Part shown: positions 6,601-64,000 of the stretch, in pieces
How the letters are laid out: every line of letters starts with the position of its first letter
Position numbering within the stretch: the stretch's first letter is position 1
Source of the DNA: Ascidiella aspersa
Taxonomy: Eukaryota
DNA: 64,000 nt
Assembly: GCA_963924565.1 (NCBI GenBank)
Contig: OZ004613.1
Span: 8,928,001 to 8,992,000, forward strand
Reading direction: 5' to 3'
The notes under the pieces: generated by a model
Told to the model about the DNA's origin: nothing
Databases searched by the model: none
What the model saw: only the letters and a program-made list of their open reading frames with translations
Made by a program: the position numbers and the translations under genes

Positions 6601-8994
6601 ATTTTAAAAAGCTAAAATAAATCTAGTTGTCCAAGTCTGGATTTACAAACGTACTTTTTGACCTTATAATATTGCGCTTTTGTGTCGAAATAAAAAGTGA
6701 TGGATCTGATGTTACGTTGCACTACAAAATTATCACCGGTTGCTAATTACGCCGACTGTGAATTCTAAAATTCATTATTAGTTTTGCGTCTTTGCTTTTA
6801 AATGTAGGGCTATATAGGATTTAGGTTTTCGCATTTCGGGATATATATATAATAACGTAATATTTTTGTGCGCTCTGGTGTTCGCCCGTTTAATTGGACT
6901 CTGGATCTGTTGTTTCCTGTCTCTAAACAATTCTACAAATCTCACGATCATTTATCGCTTGTGTTTCGCCGCGGTTTAACTTCGCACGAAAAGGTCCGCC
7001 CATTGCAATCTTTCCACGAAACGGCCGCCCTGTAAGGCAGGCCTCGGGTTCTCGGGAGCGCGTCGGTTCCCGTGAGAGAGAGTTTTTGTTTAACGTTTAT
7101 TATGAGCGGCTGACCGCTTAGCCCTAGAGAGTAGTAAACGTTTTGGGTGTAGCCTTGTGATATTAAGGGGTAAGACTTTGTGTTATATGCTCTGTCATTC
7201 GGTTGTTTGTAAGTAATTGTGTGTGTCTAGTTGTGATTATTGTTTGTGGTGTGGTAATATTTAACTCTTGCAACCAATACATCTGTACATTGGGTTTTCT
7301 TGTTGTGGTCTTTAATATAAACTCTCTTTGCTAGTTTATTTAATACCCGAAAAATAGGGCTCACTAGCGGCTTTAACGGGAAGCCAAGGTAATTTTCTAA
7401 AATTACTAGTTAAAGTCGTAACATCTGGCATTGTTAACCACTCATTGATTAAAGTTCAATAAAAATAAATGTTATGCTACAACCACTCAGTGATTAAAGT
7501 ACAATGAAAATAAGTTTTATGCTAGAATTAAAACGAAGAGGGTGTTCAATCCCGGATCGGACAAACTTTTTGCTCAAAACATAGGGTTTTTATATCAAAA
7601 TAAAATGCGACCAGCTTGGCATCCTTAACCATCCCTATTTATTAATAAGTAACGGAAACGAACTTTGGACAAGAAAACAATTATAAAAAAAATAAAGGGG
7701 GGAGAGAACTAGAATTTTGACAACTAGATTTTATTTTTTGATTTTTTTAAATTAGATTAGAATTAAAATGAGAGCACTTGTTTTTCAAACTTTTTTTTCA
7801 AATTTTTCAAGGTTTTTCAAAGTTTGTTTAAAATTGAAATTAGAGCATCTATTCCAATTTATATTAGAATATAGAATTACCGAATTCCCAACAACTATAA
7901 ATGAAACCACAATTTAAACCAAAATTACGTTTAATTAATTCACAATCAATTGAGGTTATTTGCTATTGATTCTCATAATATTCAAAATTTAGCTGTTTAG
8001 TTATTGCGACCGAAGAGTATTTAGTTCTTTGTTCAGGATGAGAGACCAAAGTATGCCGTTGGACAAAGTTCAATTTTTTGTAATACCGGAATTAGATTAG
8101 AACTAGAATTAAAGCGCACAAGCAATTCAAAATAGATTAGATTTGGAATTAGCTGCACTTTGTTCTAATCTAATTCGTTAAATGAGACTAGGGTTCACCA
8201 TATTGCGACAGTTTGTGTTGCACATTACAGTTATCGGAACCTTTATGTAAAAAGGTTGGTTACTCTTGCATTAGACAACTGGACTTAAACCAACTCTTTT
8301 CAGGCCAGAATTGTTTTAAACCATCTCGTTTCTAACAAGAATTAAAATAAACCAACTTTTTCGCCAAAATTAAAATAAAACAACTCTTTTCGAACAAGAA
8401 TTAAAATTAACCAACTCTTTTCGAACAAGAATTAAATTAAACCAACTTTCTTTGAACAAGAACTCAGACAAGCCAACTTTTGTCACCAAGAATTAATATT
8501 AACCAACTATTTTCGAACAAGAATTGAAATAAACCAACCCTTTTCGGTCAAGAACTACAATAAACCAATTCTTTTCGGTCAATAACTAAAATAAACCAAC
8601 TCTTTTCGGGCAAGAACAAAAGCTAATCAACTCGCCAACTGTTTAGATCGGCGGATTGGACGTTACCATCGTTCGAAACGCCTTCGGTCGCCAGATCAAC
8701 AGTTTCGAGGGTGAACTGCTGCTGACCGACGCCAACCTGGCCAACTCCGAATCCAAGTTCCAGGGGGTCTTTATCCGGGCGCCCGGCGTCAAATCGGTGG
8801 ACAGCGACGCCGTGTCGGTGCTCTGCCGATTTCCGGACGGCGCCGCCACCAGCGGAACCGGGGAATCCCTGATCAGCGCCGTGGGCGTGCGTCAGGGCAA
8901 CGTCATGGGATGCACCTTTCACCCGGAGCTCACTGAGGACACCAGGTGGCACAAATACTTCTTGGCCGAGGTTTTTCGACTAAAGTACAATTAA
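3676..8994 (+). CDS. PDX2: PLP synthase glutaminase subunit PDX2/SNO/PdxT (class I glutamine amidotransferase)
   Basis: Exons 3752-3890 (VNVGVLAIHGGVVEH...KPEQ), 4504-4623 (DGLILPGGEST), 4932-5009 (WGTCAGFILL, catalytic Cys) and 8647-8994 (IGGLDVTIVRNAFGRQINSFE...VFIRAP...FHPELT, His-Glu). All have GT-AG boundaries and consistent phase 0. The start exon is uncertain: 3676-3689 (MEIV+AC, weak donor GTGTTA) gives the required phase 2, whereas ATG|GTGAGT at 3316-3318 is out of phase. Confidence 0.93.
3900..4307. mobile_element. hAT-like MITE family B (CAGTGTTGTAA...TTACAACACTG termini, internal TCAAG/GACTT motifs) in a PDX2 intron
   Basis: TIR-like ends; near-TSD TAAATCTT / TAAATCGT with the right terminus clipped. 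Related copies or fragments at about 10480-10600, 11200-11608, 19077-19217, 21111, 37757-37945, 44838-45234 and 46735-46905. Confidence 0.7.
5563..5862 (+). mobile_element. Penelope-like retroelement remnant with 5' inversion (129-bp perfect palindrome) flanked by 14-bp direct repeats
   Basis: Direct repeat TTCATTCCGACATA at 5563-5576 and 5849-5862; perfect 64-bp inverted arms 5574-5637 and 5639-5702; contains a minimal hammerhead motif. Confidence 0.65.
5667..5710 (+). ncRNA. Minimal type I hammerhead ribozyme motif
   Basis: Stem I AGATATA/TATATCT, core CTGACGA(T), stem II GCC-ttagtt-GGC, GAAA, palindromic mini stem III ATATAT, predicted cleavage triplet AUA (cut after 5703). Confidence 0.65.
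6106..6639. mobile_element. hAT MITE family A, 534 bp
   Basis: 19-bp TIR CAGACTTGGACAACTAGAT / ATCTAGTTGTCCAAGTCTG; perfect 8-bp TSD GATTTACA (6098-6105, 6640-6647); internal TCTAAT motif repeats. Confidence 0.92.
6710..7423 (+). mobile_element. Probable solo LTR (Gypsy or BEL/Pao type), about 714 bp
   Basis: TGTTACG...CGTAACA termini; 5-bp flanks TCTGA / TCTGG (4 of 5 match); internal TATA-like run at about 6841; GC-rich core followed by a GT-rich tract; no ORF. Confidence 0.55.
7717..8185. mobile_element. Degenerate copy of hAT MITE family A, inverted relative to 6106-6639
   Basis: Shares GACAACTAGAT, GAATTACCGAATTCC, ATGCCGTTGGACAAAGT and AATTAGATTAGAACTAGAATTA blocks with the copy at 53564-54087; termini decayed. 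Confidence 0.7.
8287..8640. repeat. Degenerate minisatellite of about 31 bp (AACCAACTCTTTTCGAACAAGAATTAAAATA), about 11 copies, abutting the last PDX2 splice acceptor
   Basis: Visible recurring AACCAAC...AAGAA units ending just before the TTTAG acceptor at 8642-8646. Confidence 0.85.
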
Positions 8995-58822: not shown

Positions 58823-59224
58823 TCACGCGTGGTTGTCGTGTTCTTTTACTAGCGGTGCGCTTGTGTGAAATGTAACGAAGAAAATGGGATGCCACTCGAG
58901 TATGGGACGAGTACCGTTACAAACAATTGGCATAGGACATAGGCTCCAATTCGATTTAATTTTTTGTACATATTTTTACATGTGAAGATACATCGGCATT
59001 TTTTACATGAGTAATTTTGAGAGTCCAAAGTTAGGGAAAATTATCCAGCACTTAACAAAATACAGGTGGCCAAGCGAGAAAGAAATTACATAATATATTA
59101 TATGTGATTTTTTTGAAGTAAGTAAATTAGAAACAGCCTAATTTACTAAAAAGACGAAAAACATTACGCTTCATAGTTAAAGTTCATGATGTGTATCATT
59201 TTTGATTTAAGACTTGCTAAACTA

Positions 59225-62200
59225 CTAACGTTCCGGCAGCTGGCGTAAACAAACTTTAATTTTCTCGACGAGGTCAGCATCAGTTTCTTCTTCTTTTTCA
59301 AGAACTTCTTTGCAACGACTCTTTGCCGCCCCAAAGTGTTCATCCAGATTCCCACTCACCACCGCTCTGGTGTAGTTGTAGCAAGCCCAGGCGTACAAGT
59401 TGGTCGACTGGGCAATTCCAGCCTCCAGGGCTTCAACGAAACATTTCGCGGCGTCTTGGTACTTGCCCTTGCAGGCCAGATACTTGCCACAATACACAAG
59501 GCACTTGGGCGCCATAATCCAAGCAATATTGTCGCTGGCAAGTCGATAGAGTTGGTCGTGCACTTTGTCCCCCTGAGCGACGGACTCCGGGTCTGGCCGC
59601 CCCTCCAAAGCCATAAGCTTAGTGTTCACGCGGATCAGAAAGCGGCGGAGGATCATTCGGTCATAGACGGCGCCCTCTGTCTCCTTGACATGGCCGTGTT
59701 CGTAGAAATCGACCTTCTCGTCTTCGCCTGACTCCATCAGTCGCTGCAGCAAGGATTTGGCCTCGGTTAGAGTCGCCTTCTTTTCCTCGCTCGGGCGACC
59801 GTTGAGCGCCTTCAGCATGATCGGTACCAAGCTGATGGTGGTCAAACGCTCAAACAGGATTCTCAGCTCGGTGTTCTTGCCTGACTCCAGGGCGACGGCG
59901 TGCGCCAACTTAGAGTACCACTCGTACTTGCGGCGCATTGCGGCGGTCACAGGTACGTTGTAGTAGAGCAGCACGCGCCCGAACGTGTGTAGGATGGACG
60001 AGAGGCGCTCAGCGAAGAACATGCTACAGTGAGACTTGCGATCCAGGAAAGCGCCCTGACACCCCCTGAATCCGCACATAAGCGACGAAGTAAGGCCCAC
60101 GCGGGTTTCGCTCGCCTCTTTGGCACTCGAGAAAAGGGCGTGGTCGCTGTTGGCGGCCCGCGATTGGAGGAAATCGATTTCGGTCGACTTCATTTGCAGC
60201 ACCAGCGCCATGTAGTTGTCTATCGTTCCTTCGGGAAGCTCGCGAAATAAGGTTTCGCCCGCTTTGGTGCAATTACTGACGATGTCCCGTGCTGTTTCGT
60301 CCGGGTTATCGCTTGGAGTGAAGACTTTTGCGGCTTCGATGCCCTTATCTTTCACCAGAGAGTTGACCATGTCCAAAATGAGCGTCGCCGCCGAGGTAAG
60401 GCACTCTTCCGCGAAAGATTTCGATGAAAAGACGCCGAGGCTCTTCACGATTCCTAACACCTCGAGCAGATGGCACGTGCACATTTGTATGACAAACTGC
60501 TCGGAAGACAGGGTTCCGTGGGTGCCAGAAAGATCGAAGCTCTTTTTCAGGTGCGGCAGCAACGTTTCAATCTGGCTGGAGATCTTATTCATGAAAATGT
60601 TGTCTTGTGATTTCCTAAGGTCCTTGTGTACGATGCCGCTGAGGGAATAAAGCGCCGTTTTCAGCTGTTCTGTGTAATGGTCACTTTGCTCTTTGTCGTT
60701 GAGTTTGAGCATAACGCGGACAGCGCGGAACACAACCTCGTGGAAAGTGACTGTGGTGCGCAAGTATCCCGATCCGTCGATCTTACATATTCCATAGTTT
60801 TCCAGGTGTGTGATGACGTTGCCCGACGACGCCTTGTTTAGCGTAGCCGTTCGCCTGACGTCATCCCTGAACTTGGTGCGCTGTTGTTGGGCGACCCTAG
60901 CAACCAACAGCTGGGGCAGCTGGCCGTGGTGAAAGAAGCTCAACACGTTTACAACGCGCCAGATCTGCTGGTAAATCTCGTCGTCTTCCGGCTTTGATTG
61001 CAGCAGAAGGACGATCGATCGGAAGAGATGCATGAAGTTGCCGCCGTATTCCTCTCTTAAGTGATGCGCCTCCATCTCCTGCACCTCAGCTTCGAGCCGA
61101 TTGTCGCGCAGAAACTCCAAGTATTCGGTGTAGGTGCTGCGCGAGTTGACGCAGTTTGCCTTTACTGCAACCAAGCCGAGAGGCGAGCGGCTGTTCAGCT
61201 CTATTATCTTCAGTCCAGCTTCCCGCTCCTCTCTTTCCGGTTCGTTGTCGCCTCCGAAGAGCATCTCAAGTCCTTCTTCGTCTGTGAATCCGTCCACTTG
61301 AAAGCTTTTGTAGCAACGAAGTCCCTGTTTGAGTTGGGCGCTCGGCATTGACACCGAGTTTTTCCTTGAGGTAAGATAAAGGTGAAACTTGCAAGAAGGC
61401 TCGCCAACATTGAGGCCGTTGACTTGAGTCAACAAGTCACTCAACATCTCTTGCCGTACCGACTTTTGCGGATCCTCTATAAGTATCAGGATTGGGATGG
61501 CGAGACCACTCAACATAGTCATTAACGGCTTGGTTTTTCCACGTTTCAGCTCGTTTTCGACGCTGCGGTAATCACAAAGTAGAATATTGTTTTCTTTTAG
61601 GGCAATCAACATGTTTACCAGCTCGGTTTCGATGTCGTGGTTGTTGTCGTCGCACTGCACGTGCCATTTGGCATAAAGACCGGCACTGCTACCAGCACTT
61701 GTGTAAGGGAATTCGGAGGCGACCGTTCTGATTATTTCCGATTTGCCAGTCCCGGGAAAACCGTGCACGTGTAGTATGCATACCGTTTCTTTCCTTGCCA
61801 CGTCCGCTATTTCTTTGTATTTAACAGTCGAAATAAAGTTTGGTCTGGCTGTCAACGTGTTGTCGACTGGACGCGGATCGAGTTTGGGCTTTTTGGCATC
61901 TGGTCCTTCCATGATTCCTAAGAGAAAAAAAGTTGAGTTGCAGACATTTGTATTCTAAATACATTCTTTTGGCGTATGGACAAATATGTTACGGTTTAAA
62001 CTTTAAAGACATAACACTAAATACGCAGTATATGTTTCGCTTTTACAATCGCATAGGAATATCAAGCTGCACTGTTGTGGTCTGGATATCTATAAATTGT
62101 GATATGAAGTTAAATCATAACTGCTAAAACGCAGTCTCTAACCGTCTCAATTTGTTTTTATAGTGAAACTATATTTTGGGTGTTTTTCTGTAATTTGAAC

Positions 62201-63507
62201 GTTCAAAATGAATGTCAAAGTCAAAAGGGTCGAGTATCGACATCATATTACCATAATCACTTGTATTATCATCAGTTGATGTTTAGATGTCTATATACTC
62301 AATCCTTTTAGCTTTCAAATTCATTTTTAAGCTACATTACAGATACATGAATAGTGTACCCAAGTTAAGATTGTAGTGCAAACTTAGATGGTTAAAATGC
62401 CAGCCTAAATTTCAACTTTAAATGCTGATAATTTTCAATTTAAATCAAATTTAATTCTAATCTTGGTATCACTAGTTTGTAAACTATTAAACTTTGGTTT
62501 ATAAAGGACGAAGTTTCTCGTGTCTATTAGCTAGTGATGTTACAGTCTACATCATACAACCAACAGCCGCTCGAAAATGAGGCGTAACTTGTAGTATACA
62601 GCCTTACCTTGTCTTCCAATAGTAGAATTTAATATGTTGCTGTTTTTAATGACGACATGTTGTTGACAGCTATCACCGTTCACGCGTTCTGCAAATAGCC
62701 ATGCACAGTATTATCGAAGTTTACAATCTCCATTTACAGTTGTCACATTATTTCAGCAATTGCGAGACCGGGTGTTACCAAGGAATACCAAAAACAGGTA
62801 CATAGCAACCAAACCGCAATCAAACACAGTTTCATTGTTGAACAAATTTTGAACTGCTGTCTACTCAACTCACTATTTATATTGCCGCATTTTGATTTTC
62901 TGCTTGGAATTTTGACCTTCTTTGTAGTCGAGCTGCTGGCTGTAAAATATCGTTTTCGTGAAGGTTAATGATTAACTATGATTTAGCCAGTGTTTGAGTT
63001 TGTCCTATGTTTAAAATAAATCAATGATTTCTATGAATTCGAACAATATCGCCATCTTTAAAGTTGTTTATTAACAATTTGCAAAAACGACTTTAGCTTA
63101 AAAAACAACAAAATTTAACAACATCCTAATAAATCCCAAGATTATGATATAAATACACATAAAGTAACTTTTATGTTGCCAGGTGCGTTTCCATGATTTT
63201 AGTTTAAAGGCGAGGTAATTTTCGAGGGACGGCATCAAATAGATATAACGTGACGTCATGAAACACTTAATTTTTAAAAGAACTGTTGTTCTCAAGTGAA
63301 ACGGGTCATTGTCTGGTGAGGCGGCAAACCAAGATCTTTGATTTTCTAAGCTATTTAAAAAAAAACTATTGGAAGCCACGAATGGAGGCCTTAAGCGTCT
63401 TATATTCTACTGACCCTGTCCGTATTACAATTACGCTATAATTGCTAATTTCTAACTAATAAGTTACCTTTGTTTCTCGAACTTCTTCTTAGTTGTTTTT
63501 TATCCAT
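59225..63507 (-). CDS. STAND P-loop NTPase (NB-ARC-like) with C-terminal helical/TPR-like region (NLR-like protein), about 959 aa
   Basis: Large exon 61917-59225: Walker A GFPGTGKS, Walker B ILILIED, sensor-1 LYLTSR, QVDGFTDEEGLEML, GLPL-like RSPLGL, C-terminal TPR-like KCLVYCGKYLACKGKYQDAAKCFVEALE. The acceptor TTCTCTTAG at 61918 is followed by GA ATC ATG. Three in-phase (phase 1) upstream exons, 63507-63468, 62939-62874 and 62688-62608, each have canonical GT-AG ends. Confidence 0.85.
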
Positions 63508-64000
63508 GTCAATTGTAGTGGCGTCACATGAGTTTTAGTTAAGTGACTCAAAATTAGTACGATTTTTTTTCATAAAGTGTCTGCAGTCACATGTTTTATA
63601 TCAGATTATTTGCATATCGAATAGGTGTACAGTCCAGACAATGTTGGCATTCAATGTTCGCTTGTGTGTTTGGTTAGCATAATACAACCCAAAATAGCTT
63701 TAAATGGTTCGAAAATTTTTTTTTTAGATATATCAAATTGTGTTGCCGGTTTTCGGATCAAAAAAGTTTTTAATTTTTATAAAACTTTAAATTCAAATGT
63801 AAAACCATCAACTACTTGTATATCAAGCTTTGTGCTGGGTTGAAAAAATTTATAATTTTGTACAAGAATGTACAGTGACAAGACTTCAGACGTTAATTTG
63901 TTGCTAAGACATTCCTAACCGAGGTGCTAACCCTTTGGTAAGCATTCCTTTCCGTATGCCCTTAATTACACCAAAATTAGGTTCTACAAAATAAATGTCG

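Follow-up and report, generated by a model that had tools for sequence, protein, structure and literature searches.

We analysed a 64,000-nt window of Ascidiella aspersa DNA (contig OZ004613.1, positions 8,928,001 to 8,992,000; G000:C7:8928001-8992000 in our labelling of the 308.6-Mb assembly, which was also the genome searched), the minus strand of which carries a gene for an NB-ARC-TPR-type protein. The original prediction for this gene had placed a RHIM (RIP homotypic interaction motif) or amyloid-like motif on a short exon of its own at the N-terminus of the protein, and had proposed an animal NOD-like receptor (NLR; NOD, nucleotide-binding oligomerisation domain) that signals by amyloid templating. 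We found a gene of at least four exons, with all three introns in phase 1, in which the third exon encodes a candidate for a short NLR-associated signalling motif in a chordate lineage, distinct from RHIM.

Structure of the gene

Splicing was read from one raw-read RNA run labelled as the same species (X5) and from three sets of contigs (X1, X2 and X3), all mapped onto window positions 59001..65000, with X5 contributing 55 mapped reads from ~6% of the run. Contigs of X1 and X2 are continuous across the introns and look genomic; X3 was read as transcript-like because its contigs are spliced, with some pieces unspliced and the library type off record. The exon in question (exon 3) occupies 62688..62608 of the minus strand and is an 81-nt, symmetric phase 1-1 exon, with ttgcag ahead of its first bases AACGCG and gtaagg behind its last bases GACAAG. 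The joint on its downstream side, skipping intron 3 (61918..62607, 690 nt, GT..AG, phase 1, minus strand), was found in two X5 RNA-seq reads with different starts and in one X3 contig (depth 14.8). The joint on its upstream side, skipping intron 2 (62689..62873, 185 nt, GT..AG, phase 1, minus strand), was found in X3 contigs with depths of 3.7 and 8.7, the second of which has a 2-base variant at the end of exon 2 that leaves the frame intact and turns the split Lys codon into one for Glu. Because joints were observed on either side (in X3 contigs and, on the big-exon side, also in X5 reads), both borders of the exon are in use. One X3 contig (depth 10.8) skips intron 1 (62940..63467, 528 nt, GT..AG, phase 1, minus strand). 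The size, symmetry and position of the exon directly before the NB-ARC exon, as originally predicted, were borne out by AG/GT borders and joints together, with RNA-seq reads confirming the junction of exons 3 and 4.

Exon 1 ends at the joint at 63468 and, as covered by an X3 contig, reaches at least 63643 (minus strand); its start codon (63507..63505, minus strand) opens 40 coding nt, which encode MDKKQLRRSSRNK plus one base. Exon 2 (62874..62939, minus strand) is defined by X3 joints on both sides and by translation, is 66 nt long and likewise symmetric in phase 1-1, and encodes the K/S-rich peptide SSSTTKKVKIPSRKSKCGNIN. Joints and translation give RVNGDSCQQHVVIKNSNILNSTIGRQ for exon 3, within which alignment and profile mark a core, VVIKNSNILNSTIGRQ (62609..62656, minus strand), of the form h-x-h-x-N-S-x-h followed by S-T-I-G-x-Q and then by the split codon G. 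Exon 4 contains the whole STAND body and the stop codon (coding part 59225..61917, minus strand), as indicated by the list of open reading frames (ORFs), Pfam, the protein family, and the model and fold search of a Ciona relative. Its acceptor ctcttag directly precedes GAATCATGG, and its 895-codon ORF (59225..61912) starts 5 nt past the acceptor.

With phase 1 introns throughout, removal of exon 2, exon 3 or both would keep the frame. Among the mapped reads and contigs, whose depth is too low to show rare isoforms, no joint omitting exon 2 or exon 3 was found. We regard the four-exon model with its phase 1 introns, together with the alternative internal start and the frameshift allele of other individuals described below, as a sound annotation result.

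Coding status of the upstream exons

Exons 1 to 3 are very probably coding. The ATG at 63507 lies inside the X3 contig in the context gacATGg, and its frame is open through 13 + 21 + 26 full codons and three split codons (A, K and G) into the 895-codon ORF. Within exon 3, one frame of three is open, for 26 residues; the remaining frames are broken by 2 and 3 stops, and an out-of-frame ATG opens just 9 codons. Translation from ATG 63507 would include exon 3, since this exon lies in the only reading frame that is open from that ATG into the STAND body. Five paralogous ORFs in the genome (31-33% identical) all have a candidate acceptor leaving 2 nt before the first full codon, so that the position and phase of intron 3 are predicted to be the same in each, and four of the five open frames have no ATG ahead of the conserved block, which argues that coding exons further upstream are required in this family.

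Together, the coding parts of exons 1 to 3 hold 62 full codons, too few for a death-fold or TIR domain, in agreement with the predicted absence of such an N-terminal domain. The resulting N-tail, ~64 residues ahead of the STAND body, is rich in K, R and S where it is encoded by exons 1 and 2 and by the beginning of exon 4. A shorter, tail-less protein starting at the internal ATG (61912..61910) is also plausible.

The STAND body and its family

Structural modelling and fold comparison support assignment of the protein to the STAND NTPases of the CED-4/Apaf-1/plant-NLR clade, with a helical-repeat C-terminus. The 895-codon ORF contains a P-loop (Walker A), GFPGTGKSE, and in Pfam it gave matches that were all sub-threshold, to P-loop families, to NB-ARC (16.7 bits against a cut-off of 23.5) and, weakly, to TPR_2 (17.3 bits); NB-ARC reached 36.4 bits in the family member P0012. 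Structure prediction and fold search were carried out on the natural Ciona protein, and the exons of the present gene were handled individually. The AlphaFold2 model of isoform X2 of Ciona intestinalis LOC100185875, the closest named relative (42% identical), was built from a 32-row alignment and has a confident body (predicted TM score 0.81). Foldseek with this body retrieved the archaeal STAND-TPR protein 6mfv, CED-4 (TM to target 0.5-0.62), Apaf-1, NRC and ZAR1 (plant NLRs) and Avs3. On the P-loop, the Pfam match within the family and the Ciona model with its fold matches, the predicted NB-ARC-TPR architecture holds, and NB-ARC-TPR is a fair name for the protein.

An HMMER search of 1.84 billion protein representatives returned 107 relatives at E<=1e-3, of which 48 reached E<=1e-30. 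Names were attached to eight of the ten clusters looked up, all of them ascidian (Ciona intestinalis, C. savignyi, Clavelina lepadiformis and Phallusia mammillata); 10 further representative clusters are metagenome calls without spliced N-termini. A second homologue search, with a 22-row alignment, recovered the same three proteins as the first, and no proteins of the present genome were found in the protein databases searched. In the genome itself the family profile gave 11 matches, corresponding to ~9 genes. By these searches the family is small and its named members are all ascidian.

Some members have a recognisable domain ahead of the STAND body, namely TIR_2 in P0030 (E 1.6e-19, Pfam) and Death in P0078 and P0089 (E 9e-12 and 6e-18). 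These assignments support the view that in the present protein the short motif fills the slot used for TIR or Death domains in other members. Close relatives (89-99% identical) of a further member, P0011, were found on marine JGI metagenome contigs of up to 64.8 kb (L036-L041); one of these (L037) seems to carry a broken copy, its big ORF being divided into frames of 448 and 414 codons, and in another (L040) that ORF is intact, with 854 codons.

A recurrent core in the N-terminal tails

The layout of the present gene is matched in Ciona LOC100185875, where isoforms X1 and X2 have different first segments and then a common GSESTTRITIRNSILKDSAVCSQGVTIGSHET right ahead of the Met that opens the big-exon part, and two other annotated forms begin at that Met. 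Aligned by MAFFT without guidance, the exon 3 peptide and six Ciona and Clavelina tail segments fall into register on h-x-h-x-[N/D/G]-S-x-h, with one invariant Ser. The core is often followed by T-I-G or x-Q-G and occupies the same N-terminal place in the closest Ciona relative and in further members from Ciona and Clavelina.

A profile of the six segments from outside the window scored exon 3 at 6.8 bits, a value reached by 31 of 2000 composition-preserving shuffles (p ~0.016). When eight loci were scanned in six frames with the seven-row profile, an open frame was detected 1.44 kb ahead of the paralogue L003, on the strand of that gene (16.5 bits, E 7e-4); it is predicted to be a 93-nt, phase 1-1 exon with the borders cag and gtagaa that encodes TPGITNEVNIHNSTIRGLQLNVIPPNTNFS. 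With exon 3 left out of the profile this frame scored 17.2 bits, and none of 2000 shuffles reached the score. Across the family, the core pattern occurs 7 times in the 722 residues of 20 short N-tails (in 6 tails) versus 43 times in 61,685 residues elsewhere, a count that is descriptive only because the pattern was picked after the tails had been viewed. Taken together, these comparisons suggest that the motif belongs to a subset of the family, with modest support beyond composition. In the Ciona X2 model, residues 1-59 have predicted local distance difference test (pLDDT) values of 25-40 and no secondary structure, and the tail is not docked on the body of the monomer.

Weak matches in the PDB hint at the shape that the core might take. 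The best of those found with the motif profile were the alginate lyase AlyGC (E 0.039), with the repeats LAIKNSTFENL and LTIENSNVSDL, and lacto-N-biosidase (E ~1). Alginate lyases of family PL6 are described as being built of parallel beta-helix domains (PMC12992946). The core thus seems to resemble one turn of a beta-solenoid, which is a lead and not proof; what makes the resemblance interesting is that the amyloid of HET-s also folds as a beta-solenoid, according to a review of amyloid signalling (PMC7889193).

Two other tails were inspected. A likeness of exon 3 to the tail of Ciona LOC144744498, noted by eye, was rejected: BLASTP produced no alignment and 54% of shuffles reached the Smith-Waterman score. 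The paralogue L006 has a predicted ATG-bearing first exon, MEPHNSNTTITGVQGNLIIDSTIVQ (L020 514-588, minus strand; G000:C6:20783713-20783787), which ends in CAAG before the phase 1 donor gttagt and lies ~420 nt before the big exon.

A candidate signalling mechanism and its alternatives

Exon 3 adds a short strand-prone stretch, VVIKNSNILNSTIGRQ-G, to the N-tail, and we propose that this motif would stand in for an adaptor domain. It would be unstructured in the resting monomer. Oligomerisation of the NOD would then bring the tails together, allowing them to stack as intermolecular beta strands in the manner of successive beta-solenoid coils, and the stacked surface could draw in further motif copies carried by paralogues or by an effector. 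Such a mode would be that of the N-terminal amyloid signalling motifs of fungal and bacterial NLRs, without the motif being a RHIM, and the internal ATG at the start of the big exon, which is conserved in the Ciona relative, would provide a motif-less form. We put the probability of this mechanism at roughly 0.35.

Part of what had originally been proposed therefore finds a basis here and part does not. The architecture and the recurrence of the motif in the family are consistent with an amyloid-signalling NLR: the protein has a short N-terminal motif on a NOD protein with C-terminal repeats, as do NLRs with amyloid signalling motifs (HRAM, PP and sigma in fungi, BASS in bacteria), and the tail is non-globular and flanked by disorder in the model of the Ciona relative (residues 1-59, pLDDT below 50). 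The RHIM identity was not upheld, and an effector ending in the same motif, which in such systems is usually the product of the neighbouring gene, was not found in window, genome or database searches, which are insensitive to motifs of 20 residues.

Several results weigh against the proposed mechanism. At E<=10, the DNA and peptide of exon 3 matched only themselves in the genome, as did two paralogue motif exons. A six-frame scan of the 64-kb window gave nothing else above 8.2 bits, and the tail of Ciona P0065, compared with database proteins of 123-390 aa, returned only itself, with one candidate scored. Smith-Waterman comparison of exon 3 with 19 tails gave p<0.05 in only two (P0114, 0.025; P0065, 0.039), with the Ciona X2 tail at 0.057, and a crude de novo motif search over 12 tails showed no gain over shuffles (best width 10, z 1.7, 4/60 shuffles). 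The L006 first exon, in which two ..T-I-x-(G)-V-Q-G half-repeats can be seen by eye, gave no significant profile match (p 0.33), and two P0011-like genes on six metagenome contigs have no motif within 8 kb upstream and an acceptor in phase 0. No member of a set of ten homologues scanned at E<=10 had a Pfam match to the amyloid-motif families RHIM, HET-s or Ses_B. Exon 1 contains four short upstream ORFs (ATGs at 63529, 63573, 63592 and 63615), each stopped before 63507. Finally, much of the likeness among tails may be due to their common N/S/I/V/T composition. Conservation of the motif in paralogues, an expectation of the original prediction, was accordingly recovered in part: by profile in the L003 exon and the Ciona and Clavelina tails, and not in the L006 exon, in most pairwise scores or in the de novo search.

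Other searches for proteins sharing the motif gave a similar result. The motif profile matched itself and two weak sites in the genome, one with an internal stop; a local profile scan of the first 10 kb to the right of the window reached at most 8.9 bits, on the other strand; and an Atlas search with the Ciona tail was blank. The genome profile search missed the L003 exon that was found locally, which points to a lossy first-pass filter. The earlier remark that no partner effector is visible thus stands for the window, and extends to the genome and the protein databases within the low sensitivity of the tools; likewise, the suggested hunt for a protein with a similar motif produced none in either.

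One of the weak genomic sites was followed further. An open frame, ITVEDSNVSESTIGEQTVNA, at G000:C5:1963278-1963334 (plus strand; L017/L023 278-334) resembles the NSNILNSTIGRQ of exon 3, scores 16.6 bits (E 3.6 per genome) and is preceded by a strong polypyrimidine acceptor. It may represent either a C-terminal tail, given the stop three codons past the candidate donor and the AATAAA ~275 nt beyond, or an exon of 63 nt in phase 1-1; at E 3.6 the match may be due to chance. No family member was found within ~10 kb on either side and the frame was not assigned to a gene. Nine open frames in the 10 kb upstream gave weak LRR_6 matches only in Pfam, a ZU5 exon guessed nearby was not borne out by Pfam, and PDB and Atlas were blank for an open frame near the C5 frame. 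A gene for leucine-rich repeats of the ribonuclease-inhibitor type has its last exons ~10 kb upstream of it (weak LRR_6 matches; L022 1-454, plus strand; G000:C5:1953000-1953454). A fuller version of the proposed mechanism would have ascidians own an amyloid-type motif, a solenoid-turn-like stretch on the N-tails of NB-ARC/TPR proteins that is encoded by a frame-neutral exon, is omitted in internal-Met forms and nucleates a cross-beta stack recruiting a motif-sharing partner, with the C5 frame as a candidate; we consider this unlikely as a whole.

It is possible, if on balance doubtful, that the exon is coding and that the tail is a disordered, basic, low-complexity leader (a linker, or a localisation or turnover signal), with a likeness that is compositional and no templating. 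The non-significant de novo test and the many pairwise comparisons that did no better than shuffles fit such a leader, as do the K/R/S-rich exons 1 and 2 and exon 4 start, the low pLDDT of the whole tail in the Ciona model, the lack of a partner in the searches and the relatives without the motif. Composition does not readily explain, however, why a profile from foreign species picks out the L003 exon strongly and exon 3 modestly above shuffles, why a Ser-centred core aligns unguided, or why the motif sits where other members have TIR or Death domains.

The tail might instead bear a short linear motif for docking to a globular partner through beta-strand addition, for example a SUMO-interaction-like V-V-I, and one that does not template itself. 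Hydrophobic triplets (VVI, IVV, IIV and LIV) flanked by S, N or acidic residues recur in the tails and recall the consensus of SUMO-interaction motifs; the context is disordered in the Ciona model, and basic runs resembling nuclear localisation signals lie nearby. The conserved N/D/G-Ser and G-x-Q-G elements are nevertheless foreign to such motifs, and we regard this alternative as improbable.

It is less probable still that exons 1 to 3 are 5′ untranslated and that translation begins at the ATG lying 5 nt inside the big exon, the upstream frame being open by chance. That ATG has a favourable context (gaatcATGg, with A at -3 and G at +4), its Met is shared by the Ciona relative, two of whose annotated forms begin at it, and four other ATGs precede 63507. 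A scanning ribosome would, however, reach ATG 63507, itself in good context, before the internal one. Chance was gauged from the gene's own introns (108 stops in 1397 codons): an open stretch of 26 codons is not rare (138 of 1169 intron windows), whereas 62 open codons have p 0.007 by an independence estimate and were matched by 41 of 846 intron windows of equal length. Ciona isoforms X1 and X2 moreover annotate the homologous segment as protein, and four of the five paralogues lack an ATG where the big exon begins.

Relation to RHIM and other amyloid systems

That exon 3 is a divergent true RHIM, partnered by a RHIM-bearing adaptor or kinase in the manner of necroptosis or of the IMD pathway of insects, is close to refuted, the by-eye likeness of I-x-N-S-T ... 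I-G to the run-up of mammalian RHIMs and the occurrence of a RHIM-NACHT-repeat protein in amphioxus (Kajava et al. 2014) being outweighed by the searches described next and by two reports on tunicates.

The core tetrad of RHIM has the consensus [I/V]-Q-[I/V/L/C]-G, and the exon 3 peptide has no [I/V]-Q-[I/V/L]-G. Scored against the Pfam models, as had been suggested for RHIM and amyloid-motif profiles, it matched no family at E<=10, and RHIM was equally silent in the ten homologues scanned. A six-frame search of the genome with the RHIM profile (PF12721, curated cut-off 20 bits) gave 14 matches, none of them exon 3. In the PDB the peptide retrieved only GrlR (E 1.3), and neither the peptide nor the motif profile retrieved a RIPK, ZBP1 or HET-s chain. 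RHIM identity was rejected on the missing tetrad, the silent Pfam search and the absence of the exon from the genomic matches. Tunicates are reported to appear to lack RHIM (Kajava et al. 2014), and the eLife 2025 RIPK study states that no RIPK1 homologue was found in tunicates.

The genomic matches to RHIM are an observation in their own right. All 10 that were inspected, of the 14, are copies of one non-coding interspersed repeat, ..EFSGVQLGKNNFLS.., with stops on both sides (G000:C2:19665904, C4:22126173, C1:37912121 and 7 more, L024-L033; best 20.3 bits), which makes this repeat a trap for RHIM surveys in the present genome. Separately, in paralogue L004 the big exon is predicted to begin with AVGTIQIARRAIDN (L018 ~8140-8170, G000:C7:27369139..), which contains T-I-Q-I-A, one residue off a RHIM-type tetrad; this site is not among the genomic matches to the RHIM profile.

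The nearest parallel in domain order is Podospora anserina PNT1 with HELLP, its amyloid-activated effector; in PNT1 a short, non-globular N-terminal motif, an NB-ARC-type NOD and TPR-type repeats follow one another as in the present protein (PMC7889193). In that account HELLP is encoded next door and carries the motif of PNT1, whereas no partner was found for the present gene; the PP motif of PNT1 is related to RHIM, whereas the present motif matches neither PP nor RHIM; and prion behaviour has been shown for PP. The nearest animal case is amphioxus BF82280 (RHIM-NACHT-repeats), an NLR-like protein in which a short amyloid-type motif likewise replaces a death-fold domain (Kajava et al. 2014). 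There the motif is a profile-detectable RHIM on a NACHT protein; the present one belongs to an NB-ARC-like protein, is missed by the RHIM profile and stems from a lineage that, according to that study, appears to lack RHIM.

Like NWD2/HET-S and the bacterial BASS/BELL systems, the present protein has an N-terminal motif of ~20 residues on a NOD receptor, and in those systems the motif is unstructured until oligomerisation (PMC7889193). What defines them is a motif common to neighbouring genes together with fibril formation that has been shown; for the present gene, no neighbour with the motif was found in the searches. Mammalian RHIMs (RIPK1, RIPK3, ZBP1 and TRIF) are also short, rich in N, Q, G and beta-branched residues and set in a disordered context; the present motif differs in having neither the core tetrad nor a profile match, and in occurring in tunicates, reported to be without a RIPK1 homologue. 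With a turn of the PL6 lyase parallel beta-helix it shares the core h-x-I-x-N-S-x-h, the best though weak PDB match of the profile. The lyase stacks many turns in one globular chain, whereas the present protein has one turn-length stretch, so any stacking would be between chains.

Among the matches listed in the literature search, no paper was found on such a motif in tunicate NB-ARC proteins, and the review cited above asks whether RHIM is the sole signalling amyloid in animals (PMC7889193). This gene family supplies short peptides with which the question can be addressed (exon 3, residues ~22-53 of Ciona LOC100185875 and the L003 exon), each located where fungal and bacterial NLRs bear templating motifs. 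Fibrils or seeding would indicate a second animal motif family and provide a chordate model; a negative outcome would mark the tails as ordinary disordered leaders.

A frameshift allele and a local repeat

Contigs of X2 and X3 have a 5-nt deletion at 61199..61203 (minus strand), inside the 895-codon ORF, where the reference and X1 are intact. From about codon 238, just ahead of the SPLGL motif, the deletion puts translation out of frame, and a stop follows at codon 274; the X3 contigs whose splicing proves the junctions derive from this frameshifted allele. Given the intact reference and X1, the gene seems to segregate a null allele. Beyond the covered part of exon 1, window positions 64201-64600 contain a very high-copy repeat, with a summed contig depth of ~30,000 in X1 and ~55,000 in X2 compared with ~70-100 around it, and with many loose contig ends at its borders.

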